DNA of 64,000 nucleotides from Diplonema japonicum (GCA_964019335.1 OZ025660.1:248001-312000), one strand, 5' to 3'; numbered from the stretch's first letter, positions 21,604 through 45,455 are shown. Notes: generated from the letters alone by a model not told the origin. Translations and numbers: made by a program.

Positions 21604-21848
21604 TAGTATTGGGGCGTTAAGCGTGCAACGAAGCACGAACTAACTACTTGATTACAGGGGGCGCTCCTCGGCCGAGCAGTACCTTCTTCTGCGTTCCGCG
21701 TCGTGTCCTTAATGCGTGCGGTGTGCAACTCAACCCAGCCTGTTCGTTACCCTGAGCATCTGCAATACGTTCTTCCACTCGGGCGCTATCGGTGATGACC
21801 GACGAAGAGGTCAGTTAACAGCGAACAACACATTTCCATGTATTTCCA
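21604..21848 (-). mobile_element. Degenerate short non-autonomous retroposon, same family as 44552-44901
   Basis: 21644-21833 aligns closely to 44605-44839 with a ~47-nt internal deletion; terminal hairpin CGTGC/GCACG followed (sense) by CTTAA and a T-run. Confidence 0.8.
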
Positions 21849-27536: not shown

Positions 27537-27569
<33 letters not shown>

Positions 27570-27571
<2 letters not shown>

Positions 27572-27606
27572 CATTTAAGGGTACCTGCGGTATGTGACAG
27601 GACGCC
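27570..27606 (-). mobile_element. Extremely 5'-truncated insertion of the LINE 3' terminus (37 nt)
   Basis: 36/37 identical to 37920-37956; flanked by A-run+GA on both sides (apparent A16GA target-site duplication). Confidence 0.85.
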
Positions 27607-36980: not shown

Positions 36981-37970
36981 TTTTTTTTTCTTTTTTCTTT
37001 TCTTGTTCTTCTTCCTCCCTTTTTTTTTTCGGGTTTATCTAAGTGTGGGGGTTTGTTCTTTTTTTTTTTTTTGAAGGGTATTAGTTAAAAAAAAAGGAAC
37101 TTTTTTTTGACAAAGTGGGTTTTTTTTTTTTTTGGTTCATTTCTCTTTTATTTTATTATGTTGTTGTTGTTGTTGTTGGGGGGGGGGGGGGGTGGTGTTT
37201 TTTTTTCTTGGAAAAAAAAATGTAGTACGAAAGACAAAAAAAAAAGGAAGGGGGGATAAAAAAAATCATCAAAAAAAATGCAACCCTCCCAACAATCACA
37301 CAAAAAAAGGTAAAATTCATTGTGGGGGGAGAAGGGTCAGCAATGACTCACCAGACTCTTTTTTCTTTTTTTTGGTTTTCAATTTATGCTTATTCTTATC
37401 CGTCACCAGCCACGTGTCTAATAAATTGAAATCTAATATCTGTGTTGCTGAGGAACTCCTTTCTGCGAGTGATCTCTTTTCATCTTACTTTTCTCCGTCT
37501 TGTTCTTTTCCCTCTCCCTTATTGAAAAAAAGGTGACATCACATAGTGTCCAGAATCGTGACCAGCAATGCTACCACTACTTTCTTTTCTTTTTTTTTTT
37601 TAAAAAAGAAATGGGGAGTGGGGGGGAGCCTGCACCTATTTACACGTAAGCCTATGGTCCTTCATCCAAGGAAAGAAGGGGATGGGAAGAGAGAGAAATA
37701 GACCATTTCAAAACCAGACTCTTTTTTTTTTCTCTTTTTCTCTTCTTCTTTTGGACAACCCTGCGACTTTTAAACTAAAATATCGACATTTCTTTTTCTC
37801 TTTTTTTATTTTATTTCTTTTGCCCAAGGTTCCTGAAGCTGTGCCGTCTAACTAAGATACAGTCTTCTAAGGTCATGGGCTGATGTGTCAAGTAAAAAAA
37901 AAAAAAAAAAAAAAAAAAAGACATTTAAGGGTACCTGCGGTATGTGGCAGGACGCCTGAAGAGTCTCAAT

Positions 37971-40900
37971 CTATCTCTTGATCGAACCTTTCTGCTGTGG
38001 TGTGGCCTTCGGCCCCTCGTTCACCCTCCTCGGTACCTTAGGTATAAAACCCTCAACCGAGTTGGTAAGGACACAATAGTTGTACAGTTGTTTCTCAAGG
38101 ATGTGGCGGGTCACCGGGGAGGCGAATACCGGTCTAGAGGAGTAGCCCCTTACGGAGCTGTTGTAGTAACCCAACGTGCGCAGGGAGTGGACAGAAACTA
38201 CTGACGCAGCTGGGATGAGGGGCGCTATGCCCTTACTGGTGTGGATGCGTTCTAGTGCCGTTATCACCCGGCCTATTACACGCGCGCTCACTTGGATGTC
38301 CTCACCCTCTTCACAAGGTGAGAGTCCCACCGTGGCAATGAAGTCTATGGCCAGCTCAAGCCTGGAGACCTGTCCACCTGTCGTGCCCCAGTGAAGGGCA
38401 GAGAGCCATCGGATGACGTGCGGGATGAGCCGTGGGAGGTACTGTTGCCTCAAACCATTGTCGTAGTACCACCTCAGTGACCGTGGCTTGAGCAAACTCC
38501 CCTTCTCGAAAGGCCTGTTCCACAGGTGAACGCTGAAGTCCATCGTCTTTTTCCGTGCAAAGGTGAGTTGTAAGCTACCAGTGATCTCCGCCATCATCAG
38601 CTGCAACTCGGCAGTGTCCAGCCCGAGCCCCACTGTCGCGATGCCGTGCAGTTGCGTGCACCGGGGCCACTGGTTACGTTGTGTGCACAGCGCTGCCCGC
38701 GTCTCGGAAGCTGTCCTGATGTGCTCGTGCGCCTGACAGTCCCAGAGGGTGTGCTTCAGGAGTCTCGCCGTGTGTTCCGAAATGTCGAAAGTAGCGTCGC
38801 AGCCCATGCATTTCGTCCGCCCCCCGACCGTGTTGTTGATGATCTTGGGGTGGAACGGGAAAACAGCCCCAGTTATCACTTGCAGTACCCTTCGTGCTTT
38901 GGGAGGGTTGCGGGTCGCCAGGTGCAGGTGTAGCCCGTTGGTTGCCACTTCGTCGATGTCGCCCGTCCCCTGAAAGGAGGGTCTGCTCTCCACGAGGTTC
39001 GCTCGCAGGTGGACCTTCAGGAGCTTCCTGACCTCATGCTTCAGTGCCCCAGGCTCTAGGGGGACCCATTGCCGCGCGAAATGCGCCCAGCTGGACCCTA
39101 GTTCCTCCAGCAGCTCGTGGGTCTGTCCGAGTATCCCGCGCGGGGCGAGGGGGTTTCCGTTCCGGGCGGCCTCCTTGTAGCCGTCTCTGCACGCCCTGAC
39201 GAGTGAACTGGACTCACCGTCGCTCCTCATCATCCGCGCAAACGTTGTGATCCTGCGGTATGCGGCTGCTGAGTACGGGTCCAGCCTGTGTCCTTTGAAA
39301 GCCACCCCGAGCGCCTGACGAGCGTGTTGGGTTGTGTGGGCCCCATATGCAAGAGGTAATCTTCTTCCTGAGGGAGTCCAAGAGCGAGTCCGTGGGTGGT
39401 GTGTAGAGCACTCCGTAGAGCGCCGCAGGTAGGATGCAGTCTTCTATCAGTTGGGCCTTACGCGTTCTCGTGATTTGGGTCACTGTGAGCTGAGCCTGTC
39501 GACAGCATCCAGCGCCGTGGCGATCCTTGTGTTCTTCGTCCTGGTGGGCTGCAGGCACACCGTACACCCCAACATAGTTACGCTTTTCACCGTATCGAAT
39601 AAGGTGCCCCCCATCGCCAGCCTGCTTCTGTACCCCTTCTTGGTGCTAAAGGCCTTAGTTTTCCCCGGGTGTACCGACATGTTCGTCAAGCGGCAGAGCT
39701 CGTCCAGCAAGAGTATGGAACTCTGGACCGCCTTCTCCGAGATCCTAGAGAAGAGGTATAGGTCGTCCGCGTAGGAGATGGGTAGGACTTCAGGGAATGT
39801 GGTGACGCATCGCCTGGTGTAGGCAGCGAGGATGGCGTTGATGAAGACGGGTGAGATAGGGCAGCCCTGGAGGATTCCGTTTGTGGTGCGAAACACCTCC
39901 CCTACCCCCGCCTGGAAGCGCAAACGCCGGTCGAGGTTGGCGTACATGGATCTCAGCGGCCTTAGGATATTCTCGGACATGCCCAGTCTCTCCGCAAGGT
40001 CGAACGTCAACGTGACAGGGACGGAGTCGAAACACTTCCTGAAGTCTACCGACAGGCCATACAGGGGTTCTGCCCCCTGTCGAGCATTTTCCACCTGCGC
40101 ACACACTTTGAAGAGTAGGTCATCGACGCCGTGTTTTGGTCTAAAGCCGTGCTGCGTCGGGGTGATCCAACGTTCCTGCCACTCGAGAATAGCGGGGAGC
40201 CTGGCACATGCCCATAGGCGGTAGAAGGCACTGGAGACCGTGATCGGGCGATGATCTAAGGGCTCTTCCGACTCAGACTTCGGGATCATCGTGATCAAGG
40301 CAGTCAGGATCGCTTGTGGCCACACGCCGGTCGTCTCAATCCAGTCAAAGAGGAACAGGAAGCCATCGAGGAGTTCTGAGGGTAGGTGCGCTAGCTCACT
40401 CAGCCTCCATCCGTCTGCCCCTGCACAATGCTGCCGCTGTTTCTTGTTGAGGACCTTCCGAAGCTGCGCAGAGGTGAGCTCCGTGGTGGACATCGAGCAG
40501 TACGGGATATACCCCCCGAAGGATCTCACGAACTCTTCCGCTGTTGGTTCTGGCCTGTCTTTGTACATCTGGAACACAGGACTCCATGCCTCCCTGAACG
40601 CGCGGTCGATCTCGCCCAGATTGGTGCTGAGCCTCCCGTCAGCCGTCCGGACCGCCAGCAGCTCTCTCGACTGTTTTCCCTGCACTAGTCCCGCTATGGT
40701 TTGGCGATGCTTCGCGAAGTGGTACTCCATCTCTCTCTTGTGCTTAGCACCCCGCGATACTTTGCTAGCGAAGTCCATTGTTCTCTGCACTTGGAGCACC
40801 TTCGCCTGCAGCTCCGCAGCGTCCTTGGCCATATCAACCATCGGCGCCGCACTCTCAGGGATGACACGCTGGTTCACTGCACGTCGCACCGCGTTGTCCC

Positions 40901-42263
40901 ATCCCCTACAGATCTCATGCGGGGGGGCTCCACATATAGGCTTCAGCCGTCTGACTACAGCAGCACAACCCACGCGGATTTTCTCGAGCGCTAGATATCT
41001 CTTTGAGACCGCATCCACGCTGTGCGCTGTAGCAGGCGCTGTTATGCGTTTGAGAGTCGGCTCGCCCAGGCTCCGCCCCAGGTAGCTCGGATTAAAACTC
41101 TCCCTTGACGTCCCCAGTAGGTGCCGTTCGCATATCGAGGAAAGGAACTGGTAAGCACTGTCCATGTCCCCCAGCTCCTTAAAAGAAGTCAGAGTCTGAA
41201 GGAGGTCCGCGGGCGGGGGCGGTCTATGTCCGGCTGGAGCCGGGGTAATCTGCCTGGGGATGGAGAACCGGTAGGTCGCCTGCTTGAGCGCTGTCACCCC
41301 TAGCCTAAGTCTAAGGGCATGGTGTGAGGGAACCCCGATGTCGACCGTCTCGCAGTCCTTCAGCGTGTGTGCCGCAACCTTGTTGAGCAGGATGTAGTCC
41401 GGCCTGGTCCTTGCCACTGCAGTGACAAAGGTCGGGGGGGTCTCCTCGTTCTTGCGCCTGGCAATTGTGGCGGCCGCGTCATCAACCCACTGGCTCGCAA
41501 GCGCTTCAGCTAGTACGGGGGACTCCCCCACCGACGTGTTGAAGTCGCCTGTGATTGCCACTGGGACTTCCCCTAGTTCACACACGCCGCTAACGGTTTC
41601 GTGCAGCAGCCTCTCCCTTTCCTGTCTGGCGTTTGCTGTGCCGTCTTTCACTGGACAATAAAGGGTGATCACATGCAGCCATGAGTTGGTCCCAATCGCG
41701 ATCCTTGCGTGCACCCTCCGCGACGTCGACATGTCTCCATTGAACACCGCGTTGTCCTTCAGCGCCAGGAGCCGTTTCTTCACCAGAATGCCCACCCCTC
41801 CTCGTTCTGCAACATCTGGAGCCGCAAGCCCGTGAATCACTTTGCACTCTTGAGGCGGACCCCACAACGTTCTGTGCGCTTGGAGGAATGAGTCAGTCTT
41901 CGTCTCCAGCTCGACCCTTAGTTGACCTGCCTTCGTGAGGGCCGTCTCTTGCAGACAGGCGATGTCGAAGCACTGCGTCCTAATCCTGGATTCATGATTC
42001 CTGTAGTTAGTCATGTTTGCAGAAAGCAGCACCAGTTCGTCCGGGTCGGCGGGCCCCGGGTTGGGGTGAATGTCACCATGTGTGAGGAGCCTCCTACGGG
42101 CTTCGCCTGCAATCGATTTCCTCGAGCGCTTGGCAATGTATCGGCAGCTTCGTGGCAACGCCATCGGCCGGCAGCGGGAGTATAACGCGCCGTTGGAGGG
42201 AGCACCAAACCAGTCGGAGGGTATGCAGCGTGGGCTGAGGAGTGAGAGAGCGTCGAGGGTCAT
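37971..42263 (-). CDS. LINE ORF2: 2A-like peptide, AP endonuclease, reverse transcriptase, C-terminal CCHC; two frameshifts (~39490, ~39310)
   Basis: DIACLQET, GGVGILV, ITGDFN, RPDYILL (APE); RPITV, QHGFRP, DFRKCFDSV, GILQGCPISP, SYADDL (RT); CMGC..KHTLWDC; split over ORFs 39480-42263, 39214-39567, 37971-39305. Confidence 0.9.
42051..42089 (-). other. 2A-like (StopGo) motif LLTHGDIHPNPGP
   Basis: NPGP motif immediately upstream of the APE domain; His replaces the canonical Glu of DxExNPGP. Confidence 0.7.
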
Positions 42264-42344
42264 CCCGTCCAGCGTGATCAGTGTGACAAGCGCGAAAAGG
42301 AAAAGGAACAGGGGACGGAGCAGGGAGCCTGACCATGCAGATAG

Positions 42345-43913
42345 TCAGTTGAATTCATCCTGCGTGATCGCCGCTACATCCATAAGTGCTGCCTGGTCAG
42401 CGTCCCTCTTACGCGTGGGGGAGGCGGATTCGGCAGCCGCGCGTTCAGCTTCAGCCTCCGCTTTAGCCTTCGCGAGCGGGGACAGTGGAAATTCGGCCTC
42501 CGTAAGCTTCACCCGGGACCTCCCTTTGGGATGGAACGCGCGCCCGATGCGGTTCGGCTTGTCCTCGACCGTCCATTCTCTGATTGAAATGGAGGTCAGG
42601 TTGTCTGCACGGCGGATGACGGGGTTGGAGGGAGCCTCCTCTGCCCTTGCCAGCCATCTCCTCCCCGGCAACCGGCTGAGCTTCTTCACGACCCATCCCC
42701 GCATCCTGCAGTCGTCGATGATGTCGCACTGGTGCTCGCAGTGCCCGGCCCCCTCGATAACAAACTTCCTCCCCACCTGGTCCTCCGGCAGGAAAACAGC
42801 GCCCAGGGACTGTACCACCACGTGTCGAGCAGTGCCTGGTGGGAGCATGATCGCCAGGCCGATGGGAGTGAGGGCTACACGGAAGCTAGAAGAGGTCCCG
42901 GTGAAGGTACGGGGAACATCCCGCGGATGGATCGAATCTTTGAGCTGGATGACTTCCAATCGCTCTTCGGGGAGTGCGTGTGTCCAATACACATCGTTGT
43001 CTCCGCTGCCGCTGAGGAGGCGGGCGGCGTGTTGCCAGTCCACGCGCACCCTTGCCGTCGCACGCTGTGCCGTCCTCTCCACCCGCCAGACGTTGCTCCT
43101 CACGACCTCGTGCACCCCCTGCTTGTCCCTTGCTGCTAGCATGGCCATCCTGGCTATTGCCTCCCCGTCCGACGTCTTCGCCCATTGCGCGGCGCCGCAG
43201 AACTTCTTGGCGATAATCGCCACGAGGACAACGGACCTGTTAGTCCTTTGGGGCTTGTCGCCGTCGGCCATCACAGGGTCGTAGTGCTCGCCGGCAGTCC
43301 AGAGGGCCTTGATGCCTCTGCTGGTGGGGGTTGCAACTTCCCTAGCGGCCTCGAACAGGGTTTTCGAGACGACACGATAGTCGAGCTCGAGACTCGCCAA
43401 CCTCGCCGCTAGGACTGCGGGTTCGGGGCAGTCGAAGTAGATCCCTTTGACGAGTGGCTCAGGGACCTCGTAGAAGATGGGCGCACCATTCCAGTGTTTT
43501 GCGTCCAGGGTGGTCTTTGGTGGGGGGCCTCTCAGCTTGTCAGCCCATGAAGAGGTCTCAGGCTGCTTCTGCGGGTTCGTCCTGGGTTTGATAGGCCCAC
43601 CGACCGTCTTCCACTTCCCGGCCTTCTGTTGCTGCGGTTGCTGTTGCTTGGCTGGGGTCTGCTTCTGCCCCTGCTGCTGCTTCTGTCCTTGCATCTTTTG
43701 TAGCTGCACCTGCTGCTGCTTCTGTTGCTGCTTCTGCTGCTGTCCCTGCTGCTGCTTCTGTTGCTGCTTCTGCTGCTGTCCCTGCTGCGGGGGACCGCCC
43801 TCCATCAGGGTCAGCACCATGCCGATGAGGCGCACGCACTCCTCGCTCCATGCGCCTTGGCCCACCAGCCTCTCTGCCCTGTCGAGCATCTCTCCGATCG
43901 TCTTCTTATCCAT
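42345..43913 (-). CDS. LINE ORF1 (Q-rich N-terminus, no recognisable gag knuckle)
   Basis: 522-aa ORF inside the element boundaries, upstream of and in frame with ORF2. Confidence 0.8.
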   Translation of the reverse strand: MDKKTIGEMLDRAERLVGQGAWSEECVRLIGMVLTLMEGGPPQQGQQQKQQQKQQQGQQQKQQQKQQQVQLQKMQGQKQQQGQKQTPAKQQQPQQQKAGKWKTVGGPIKPRTNPQKQPETSSWADKLRGPPPKTTLDAKHWNGAPIFYEVPEPLVKGIYFDCPEPAVLAARLASLELDYRVVSKTLFEAAREVATPTSRGIKALWTAGEHYDPVMADGDKPQRTNRSVVLVAIIAKKFCGAAQWAKTSDGEAIARMAMLAARDKQGVHEVVRSNVWRVERTAQRATARVRVDWQHAARLLSGSGDNDVYWTHALPEERLEVIQLKDSIHPRDVPRTFTGTSSSFRVALTPIGLAIMLPPGTARHVVVQSLGAVFLPEDQVGRKFVIEGAGHCEHQCDIIDDCRMRGWVVKKLSRLPGRRWLARAEEAPSNPVIRRADNLTSISIREWTVEDKPNRIGRAFHPKGRSRVKLTEAEFPLSPLAKAKAEAEAERAAAESASPTRKRDADQAALMDVAAITQDEFN

Positions 43914-44093
43914 TTTGGTAGGAAGAATAATTATTTTTTAATAAATATATTTAAATATTTTATATTTTATTATTTTTATTTGTTTTTTTGTTAAGTTTAT
44001 AGTATGATTGATGTACCACGTCACCTCCCGTGTAGTAAGGGAAGTAGAGATTTACCCCGTTAACGCCTTTATTTATCAGCCACGGGGAGCGAC

Positions 44094-44109
44094 CAATAAA
44101 GTACAGAAA
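44094..44109 (-). other. Spliced-leader 3' remnant TTTCTGTACTTTATTG at the LINE 5' end
   Basis: Exact match to the conserved 3' end of the kinetoplastid/diplonemid SL exon (...CAG TTTCTGTACTTTATTG). Confidence 0.85.
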
Positions 44110-44551
44110 AAAGAGAGAGAGAGAATGGGCAAAGTTTTTCTTTGTCTCTGTGCGCTTCCTTGTAACGCATGGAATCGCTGCCTTTTTTTTTTAATTCTTT
44201 TTTCCCTCCTTCAGTCGTGCGATGTCTTGTTTCCTCGTTCCTCACAGTGCCGTCTACTGCAGTGGTCAGTGGGTGTAGAGATACCTTTCAAGGGAGGAAA
44301 CTTTTTTTTTTCTTTTTTATTTCACCTTTTTCTTTTATTTCTTTTTTTTTTTGTTTCAACGAAAACTGGCACTTCTTCTTTTTTTTTTTTTAGAAAAGAC
44401 TGTTTTATCGCTGAGAGAAAAAGAAGAAAAAAAAAAAAAAGGGTGGGGGTGGGAGATAAAAAAAATAGAAATAAAAATCATGAAAAAAAAAGGGATAAGA
44501 GGCAAGGGGCGAGGGGACAAAAAAAAAAAAAAAAGAAAAGAAAAAAAAAGA

Positions 44552-44901
44552 GACTATTTAAGGGTGCCTGCAGTATGTGGCAGGGCGCCCTGCACAAGTA
44601 TCGTCTACTTGATTACAGGGGGCGCGCCTCGGCCTAGTTGTAGCTTCTTCTGCGTTCCGCGTCGTGTCCTTAATGCGTGCGGTGTGCAACTCAACCCCAG
44701 CCATGGTGCCCCCGGTAACCAAGATTCTGAGCCCGTGCAGTTTGCTGCCTGTTCGTCACCCTGAGCATCTGCGATACGTTCTTCCACTCGGGCGCTACCG
44801 GTGATGACCGACGTGGAGGTCAACAGCGAACAACACATCTGATGTACTTCTTTATATTTCCATATTTCTGTGTTATCCCCACCACCAATAAAGTACAGAA
44901 A
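44552..44901 (-). mobile_element. Short (~350 bp) non-autonomous retroposon: SL remnant at 5' end, LINE-like hairpin at 3' end
   Basis: 44552-44590 homologous to the LINE 3' end; 44886-44901 is the SL remnant; body shared with 21644-21833; AAAAAAAGA on both flanks. Confidence 0.88.
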
Positions 44902-45455
44902 AAAAGAAAAAAAGGAAAGGGCGTGCTGCTTTAGCAGATGGAAATTAGGCTCGTTCTTTCCCTTGAAAGGGAAGTGTGGAAATCAGGAAACCTTTTTCTT
45001 CTTCTTTTCCCGTTGTTTATTCCAAGTGTAAAAGTGGTGCACAACCCACTGTGAGGATGCAATAAAATAAAGGACAATGAAAAAAAACAAACCTATAGTT
45101 ATTCATCCTCAACAGGGCTAGAAGGGAAAAAAAGAGGGGGGGTGGGAGGGAGAGAAAAATATCTGAGCCATTTCGAACGATGAGGTGCCTCTCCCATTTT
45201 AATTCAGAACCTAAAATACCTTTACCCATAACTCCCCCACACCTCGCCGTTGCATAATAGTGCAAAGGAAACAGGCTGTGAAGTCTATAGTCTAGCCAAA
45301 ACGCTCTCCTTTTGCTTGCTTAGACAACGATTCGCTCTCGCAAAATCATTCCTTTTTTTTTTATTGTTGGCGAATATTTTTCTTCATTTTCTTTTTACCT
45401 AATCTTTTTAACCCCGGAAAGTACGACGTCTCCCCATAATTATTTCTCAAAATGT

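Follow-up and report, generated by a model that had tools for sequence, protein, structure and literature searches.

The question raised by this locus is why a LINE and a short neighbouring element that have almost nothing else in common begin with the same 16 nucleotides, and how those nucleotides came to be there. The window analysed here is a stretch of 64,000 nucleotides from Diplonema japonicum (GCA_964019335.1 OZ025660.1:248001-312000), in which the 16-mer TTTCTGTACTTTATTG occurs exactly twice, both times on the minus strand (Table 1). The chance expectation is 0.07 and none of 100 shuffles gave two matches. Read on the minus strand, each copy is preceded by T-rich sequence and followed by GT (GTCGCTCC and GTGGTGGG). 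A local blastn shows that the two elements share only their first 18 nt and their last ~54 nt (89% identity), and nothing between them aligns. The observation in the earlier note, that both elements start with this 16-mer followed by GT and that their 5' UTRs are otherwise unalignable, is confirmed.

The first copy heads an element with a reverse transcriptase domain (Pfam RVT_1, 80.1 bits against a cut-off of 29.6) preceded by an apurinic-type endonuclease (Exo_endo_phos, residues 71-295, 24.7 bits against a cut-off of 24.5). The endonuclease match is marginal in the window copy but clear in relatives, at 42.8 and 45.6 bits. A protein search returned only three ORFs from EukProt transcriptomes and a search of the ESM Atlas only generic APE+RT clusters, neither of which places the LINE in a named clade.

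Table 1 Features of the window, counted from its first nucleotide
Position	Strand	Feature	Observations
44902-44915	-	T-rich 5' flank of the short element (ccTTTTTTTcTTTT)	A 12-nt stretch recurs in the 3' run; it may be a target-site duplication, but this is inferred and cannot be told apart from simple T-richness
44552-44901	-	Short (SINE-like) non-autonomous element, 350 bp, as a whole	
44886-44901	-	16-nt spliced-leader relic at the 5' end of the short element	Exact match, identical to the last 16 nt of the exon of the genome's SL RNA gene; sibling SINE copies carry the full SL at the same junction
44552-44885	-	Body of the short element, starting GTGGTGGGGATAAC and ending ...CCCTTAAATAGTC	1394 first-look candidates in the genome, of which the 40 scored are 90-100% identical
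44519-44551	-	TC + T-rich run after the short element (tail and/or target T-tract)	All 27 full-length copies examined end in ...CCCTTAAATAGTC, then TC and a T-run of about 6 to 50 T
37920-44109	-	APE+RT LINE as a whole	
44094-44109	-	16-nt spliced-leader relic at the 5' end of the LINE	Exact match
43914-44093	-	LINE 5' UTR (GTCGCTCCCCGTGG...)	No ribozyme or other Rfam family in 43975-44109; bases 43935-43974 lay outside this and later database searches
42345-43913	-	LINE ORF1 (522 aa)	No recognised domain
39480-42263	-	LINE ORF2 (927 aa), APE-type endonuclease followed by reverse transcriptase	45-47% identical to 1328-1454-aa ORFs from EukProt transcriptomes
37971-39305	-	LINE ORF3 (444 aa), no Pfam match	46% identical to residues 1016-1454 of P0001, the single 1454-aa pol ORF of a EukProt transcriptome; the pol frame of this copy is therefore interrupted between 39305 and 39480
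37920-37970	-	LINE 3' UTR with a hairpin (CCTGCCACATACCGCAGG) and then ACCCTTAAATGTC, the module shared with the short element	Folds with z -3.5 (LINE) and -2.1 (SINE) against shuffles
37894-37919	-	T26 run after the LINE (tail and/or target T-tract)	
27544-27606	-	5'-truncated copy of the same LINE (last 37 nt)	Lies between a T16 and a T32 run
21644-21846	-	Older, diverged copy of the short element	73% identity

The 16-mer is a remnant of the organism's own spliced leader, as the earlier note had proposed. In the genome assembly (62.5 Mb, 132 contigs) it occurs 252 times, against 0 for the reversed control, and in most of the first 30 loci examined it is preceded by ACCAACGATTCTAAAGCTACAG. 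Loci retrieved from the genome are denoted here by L numbers. The genuine SL RNA genes (L078:1411-1542:-, with two more copies in L081) share an upstream region, a 39-nt exon, a 93-nt intron starting GTACCC and a T6 terminator, and a 5S rRNA gene lies beside them. The exon differs at two positions from the published Diplonema leader, so the organism is a diplonemid-type euglenozoan, and the 16-mer is the 3' end of this exon, starting right after the internal ...CTACAG.

The remnant is strongly enriched at the 5' ends of elements. Of the 252 occurrences, 228 follow a G (the full SL or a tandem form), 21 a T, 2 an A and 1 a C. One of the 21 preceded by T is a full SL with an extra T; of the other 20, genuine T-run junctions, 8 head the LINE family of the window (GTCGCTCCCCGTGG...), 11 head a sister family (GTGTCCGACCGTGCC...) and 1 heads the window's SINE. 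A census that does not depend on the SL gives the same picture, although it requires exact cores and so misses diverged copies. All 14 genomic copies of the first 16 bases of the window's LINE are preceded by at least 12 nt of the SL 3' end, eight by a T-run and the 16-mer, two by the full SL and four by 12-13 nt. All 39 copies of the sister family are likewise preceded, 22 by a full 37-39-nt SL, 14 by 12-17-nt relics, two by tandem forms and one by a full SL with a point change. Taking the two related families together, all 53 copies that keep their first bases carry SL sequence, 26 of them the whole SL and most of the others a T-run plus the 16-mer. None has an AG at the junction and none extends upstream with element-specific sequence, the T-rich flanks beyond the SL being different at every locus. 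Three conditions had been set beforehand as able to refute the interpretation, namely that the species' SL does not end in the 16-mer, that the 16-mer is not enriched at element 5' ends, and that other copies extend upstream with element sequence; none of the three holds.

The short partner shows a more mixed picture. Among 42 distinct 5' ends, three carry the full SL, two the 16-mer and one TTTATTG, about 20 have a T-run + TTG and 9 a T-run + TGG, and ten have an AG directly before GTGGTGG, exactly the point where the SL is joined in the SL-bearing copies. Five of the 42 came from loci fetched because they contain the 16-mer, so that SL-bearing copies are over-represented in this sample. Most SINE copies show at most 3 SL-like bases, which cannot be told from a T-run plus G. 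An Rfam search of 43975-45100 at E up to 1 gave no tRNA, 5S or 7SL head on either strand and no ribozyme, only chance microRNA-like matches; bases 43935-43974 lie outside this range, although they were included in the alignment of the whole LINE against the window itself.

At the other end of the LINE, the last 19 nt of the hairpin module occur 440 times in the genome, and 99 of the 100 copies listed are followed by (TC)0-4 and a T-run, not poly(A). With 440 3' ends against 14 5' ends, this is the usual LINE 5' truncation. The 37-nt truncated copy in the window, flanked by T-runs on both sides, shows that the upstream T-run belongs to the insertion site and not to the leader, and one copy (L133) sits in the T-run of another LINE's tail. 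All four elements in the window lie on the strand of nearly all long ORFs, that is, sense to the host polycistron. We read this as insertion into T-tracts of the coding strand, where an oligo-U-ended RNA would pair with the A-run of the nicked strand; this last step is inference, as the tail and the target cannot be separated. With T-runs as flanks, target-site duplications cannot be read, and the spacer 44110-44551 has no second copy, so that no empty site exists in the assembly. The body of another SL-headed unit, the A-tailed L001, was searched for a parent gene and is unique in the genome.

How did the leader get there? Four lines of evidence favour trans-splicing. The junction is at the last base of the SL exon in every family. 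Full-SL copies begin at SL nucleotide 2, as expected if the reverse transcriptase stops at the modified first A, a stop reported for Diplonema RNA-seq. Copies of the SINE with an AG|GTGGTGG acceptor exist. Finally, in the sister family L135 carries the SL plus a 16-nt relic and L120 the SL plus a 22-nt relic, which are exactly the products expected if a genomic SL-headed copy, lying behind its T-run, is trans-spliced again at one of its two internal AGs, ACAG| or AAAG|. Similar tandems occur in another family (L018 and L030), but they are rare: 2 of 39 in the sister family and 0 of 14 in the window's own.

It does not follow that trans-splicing is the regular way in which the transposition template gains its 5' end, and the interpretation offered in the earlier note is only partly supported. 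Its identification of the SL remnant, of a dispersed APE-type element distinct from insertions in SL arrays, of the sense orientation and of the T-tracts is supported, and the junctions fit its suggestion that T-rich patches of the leader anneal to a target T-run. However, with no AG at any of the 53 LINE junctions, present copies cannot regain the SL at that point by canonical trans-splicing. Moreover, the tree of 300 nt of element body in the sister family splits into one clade of 24 copies (21 full SL, the two tandem forms and the point-changed copy) and one of 15 (14 relic, 1 full SL), and the labels are far more clustered than in shuffles (0 of 500). The relic is therefore largely inherited rather than remade at each insertion, the idea that each 16-mer junction is an independent truncation is rejected, and the four copies of the window's own subfamily, 95-100% alike, all have a T-run + 16-mer. 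One plausible way for such copies to breed true is that read-through RNA includes the upstream U-run and that the A-run of the cDNA pairs with the target T-run, so that everything upstream is lost; SINE copies that share T-run + CAG at different loci point the same way.

The explanation that we consider likely is that the 16-mer was fixed in DNA because SL-carrying element RNA was reverse-transcribed. In this view the LINE is a stringent-type APE+RT element that recognises a 3' hairpin module shared by its short partner and inserts into T-tracts on the coding strand of polycistrons, so that copies would lie sense to host transcription, directly downstream of a pyrimidine run, and could be read through by Pol II without a promoter of their own. 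At some point element RNA would have received the SL at its first base by trans-splicing, and cDNA made from such RNA would either have reached the 5' end of the leader (the full 38-39-nt copies) or been joined to the target T-run at a T-rich patch of the leader (16-, 15-, 13- and 12-nt relics in the LINEs; TTTATTG or TTG in the SINE). Once acquired, the relic is passed on within a lineage as part of the element. Our analysis establishes the SL origin, the common junction, the T-tract context, the sense orientation, the shared 3' module, the inheritance of the 5' class and the presence of re-splicing products. The attachment of the SL by trans-splicing, its presence on element transcripts, read-through transcription, joining by microhomology and priming on the A-run of the nicked strand are inferred from DNA sequence alone, none of the 10 sequencing runs of one organism that contain the stretch being on record as RNA.

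The rival that survives best, although we regard it as unlikely, is that the reverse transcriptase puts the leader on, or renews it, by switching templates, an alternative which the earlier note had raised. After copying the element's 5' end or its 16-nt relic, the nascent cDNA would pair with the identical 3' part of the SL on SL RNA or on any capped mRNA and run to the cap, without trans-splicing of the element RNA itself. The main support is that L138, a full 38-nt-SL copy, is identical over 300 nt to L133, which carries the 16-nt relic, so that a full leader can reappear in a relic lineage; trans-splicing does not explain this, and a homology-driven switch is the simplest explanation. The absence of AG at the LINE junctions agrees with it, and several further features fit an enzyme that often jumps near 5' ends: stuttered 5' ends, with repeated partial SL plus the first 5-10 element bases, in L097 and L098; an SL joined at a non-AG internal point of another element's UTR (L010 compared with the UTR of L020); retrocopies of the whole SL RNA, exon and intron, in L077 and L087, showing that SL RNA does reach the reverse transcriptase; and a 'CC' recurring between the T-run and the SL in all subclades, suggesting that a true RNA end was reached each time. 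Most SL-headed families also start with GT, like the SL intron, but this match alone, to which the earlier note had pointed, is weak evidence. Against this reading, a jump to the 3' end of SL RNA would carry the intron along, whereas the junction is exactly at the exon's last base in every family; the 16-nt and 22-nt tandem relics end exactly at the two AG dinucleotides, as splicing predicts; and AG acceptor copies exist for the SINE. As a homology-driven jump needs a relic already in place, it explains renewal of the leader better than its origin.

We consider it very unlikely that the leader sequence acts as an internal initiator or promoter module copied from part of an SL RNA gene, from which SL-headed copies would be transcribed from SL position +1 and regenerate SL-terminal RNA without splicing or jumping, in parallel with Pr77 of L1Tc/ingi. 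All 53 LINE 5' ends keep SL sequence, full-SL copies begin precisely at SL nucleotides 1-3 whatever the flank, and in trypanosomatids Pr77 binds the SL-gene factors TBP and SNAP50 (PMC8190864). However, the genuine SL genes share a conserved upstream region that the retrocopies lack, relic-only lineages with 12-16 nt propagate well, and most SINE copies lack the SL. That the 16-mers are chance matches, decayed SL RNA genes or flanks of a SLACS/CRE-type insertion into an SL gene is refuted by the low chance expectation, the absence of an SL intron after either copy, the unique intergenic T-tracts flanking every locus, the APE-type endonuclease, and the fact that SLACS/CRE elements split the SL at nucleotide 11/12 whereas here it is intact or truncated from its 5' side.

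A bolder reading, which remains compatible with the data but which we hold only tentatively and think less likely than not, is that the leader or its 16-nt relic is a working part of the element rather than a scar. It would act as a homology handle that lets the reverse transcriptase leave a read-through transcript of undefined 5' end and jump onto SL RNA or any SL-capped mRNA, so that each new copy would end precisely at a cap-proximal leader, or alternatively as an SL-gene-like internal initiator. Together with T-tract targeting and U-run/A-run priming, this would be a promoter-free way for a LINE to define both ends in a polycistronic genome, and a third solution beside Pr77 with a ribozyme and beside insertion into SL genes.

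The finding matters because a retrotransposon in a genome without gene-specific promoters must still produce an RNA with defined ends. Trypanosomatid LINEs do this with an internal promoter and a ribozyme, and SLACS/CRE elements by sitting inside SL genes. Here every copy of the two LINE families that keeps its first bases carries host leader sequence, and the elements home to the T-tracts that also serve as trans-splicing signals, which points to a different solution that uses the host's mRNA-capping route. It also provides a built-in tag of retroposition in diplonemids, a very abundant marine group, marking RNA-derived DNA as DinoSL does in dinoflagellates, and it explains the hundreds of stray SL fragments reported in Diplonema. 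The series of full-SL, relic and tandem-relic copies makes the question of splicing versus template jumping directly testable. In metagenome contigs, the pattern of 16-mer + GT + N6 + CCGTG gave no hits, while the 3' 26-mer of the diplonemid SL gave at least 120 contigs, most of them metatranscript 5' ends with the same SL variant and a few SL RNA genes, none of which encodes this LINE. Our literature searches, in a collection too incomplete for this to be proof of absence, found no description of LINE/SINE families headed by the SL or of T-tract-targeted, T-run-ended LINEs; leader relics on retrocopies and stray SL fragments as such were already on record.

The closest analogue is the relict spliced leader on retroposed genes of dinoflagellates (PMC5585692, PMC6050394). 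There too the species' own leader is fixed in DNA at the 5' end of a retrocopy, exactly at the exon end, and tandem relics truncated at an AG inside the leader are read as re-splicing of the retrocopy, but the tagged sequences are host genes with poly(A) tails, whereas here they are the LINE families and their SINE partner themselves, with T-run ends, and the relic is inherited as part of the element. In Diplonema papillatum, the same kind of organism with the same kind of leader, hundreds of partial fragments of the 39-bp SL exon lie outside the SL arrays, and the authors suggested that they are by-products of retrotransposon activity (Valach et al. 2023, PMC10161547, Additional file 1). That remark is confined to the supplement, the main text saying nothing on this, and does not link the fragments to element 5' ends, T-tracts, relic classes or a LINE/SINE pair. 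The trypanosomatid L1Tc/ingi elements with their NARTc/RIME partners (PMC1874656, PMC3185411) are likewise euglenozoan APE-type LINEs with a short partner sharing their ends, which must create a defined 5' end inside a polycistronic genome. L1Tc uses a 77-nt internal promoter plus an HDV-like ribozyme, gives unspliced transcripts and ends in poly(A); here, in place of a conserved 77-79-nt signature, LINE and partner share at their 5' ends only the SL relic + GT, no ribozyme was found by Rfam in 43975-45100, and the 3' end is a hairpin plus a T-run.

SLACS, CZAR and CRE, and nematode NeSL, are also retrotransposons physically linked to spliced-leader sequence, but they are site-specific elements with a restriction-like endonuclease C-terminal to the reverse transcriptase, inserted inside SL RNA genes. 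The element described here has an APE domain and no Pfam match in ORF3, is dispersed in intergenic T-tracts and carries the SL as its own 5' end, with SL sequence on the 5' side only. In mammals, L1-U6 snRNA chimeric retrocopies (compare PMC13174262) join an abundant small nuclear RNA to the 5' side of a LINE copy by the LINE's own reverse transcriptase and are a model for template switching; U6 is joined whole, at variable points of a 5'-truncated L1, whereas here only the SL exon is joined, always at the element's first base. Lastly, as in stringent LINE-SINE pairs that share a 3' end, such as UnaL2/UnaSINE1, the partner shares the LINE's 3' hairpin module and far outnumbers it, but it has no tRNA, 5S or 7SL head in Rfam, and its tail is (TC)n-T(n) rather than a short repeat or poly(A).

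Two abundant SL-headed families were found to start GTCGTTCGTG... and GTCGTCTGTG... (loci L006, L009, L013, L020, L023 and L024), in which a UTR of ~ 150–190 nt is followed by an ORF that starts MDPRRN and carries a 2OG-Fe(II) oxygenase domain (53.6 bits). Many copies lie near contig ends and, in L013, one sits beside (CCCGCAAA)n repeats; this may be a telomere-associated element. Four 16-mers on a single contig are spaced ~ 10.66 kb apart, which suggests a large tandem repeat whose every unit carries an SL-headed sequence. In the LINE of the window, ORF1 and ORF2 are separated by a short gap, and the 5' UTR includes an AT-rich stretch which was left out of all the later external searches.

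Retrocopies of the whole SL RNA, exon plus intron, were seen at two loci (L077 and L087), where they have foreign, T-rich upstream flanks; in L087 the SL RNA copy is followed by TTTT, then AAAG, then a SINE. An SL-headed unit of ~ 620 nt (locus L001), unique in the genome, ends in poly(A) and is preceded by an A-run, suggesting a second, A-tailed mode of retroposition in the same genome. At two further loci (L097 and L098) the 5' ends are stuttered, with repeated partial SL 3' pieces, each followed by the first 5–10 bases of the element, arranged in tandem. In about half of the full-SL LINE copies (L102, L108, L117, L118, L121, L122, L126–L128 and L136), ‘CC’ lies between the upstream T-run and the SL. 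It recurs in all subclades and is not present in the SL RNA gene, and these may be extra bases added when the RT reaches the capped end.

Positions of the additional SL-related loci and LINE features (L, locus; C, contig; G000, genome)
Feature	Locus	Position	Strand
Example of the two SL-headed families with a 2OG-Fe(II) oxygenase ORF	L020	1-1498	-
Retrocopy of the whole SL RNA	L077	C2:~150573	
Retrocopy of the whole SL RNA, followed by a SINE	L087	C30:~484556	
SL-headed unit ending in poly(A)	L001	C1:315900-316600	
Stuttered 5' end	L097	C60:170281-170327	
Stuttered 5' end	L098	C90:~402690	
Four regularly spaced 16-mers		G000:C24:7178, 17837, 28496, 39079	
Gap between ORF1 and ORF2 of the LINE		window 42263-42345	
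AT-rich stretch of the LINE 5' UTR		window 43935-43974	

Environmental transcripts among the metatranscriptome contigs (L141, L143, L146, L160, L169, L172, L173 and others) carry the same SL variant (...GATTCTAAAGC...). Many of them start with a partial SL followed by a second SL that lacks its first 4–6 bases, which may be an assembly or library artefact, or may represent real double leaders. A groundwater metagenome contig of 6636 nt (L198), from a different leader type (A-run + AAAGCTACAG...), has a 5'-truncated SL-like relic directly before an ORF, with an RT-like region upstream (24% identity to ORF2 of the LINE). SL relics may therefore also occur in other euglenozoans.
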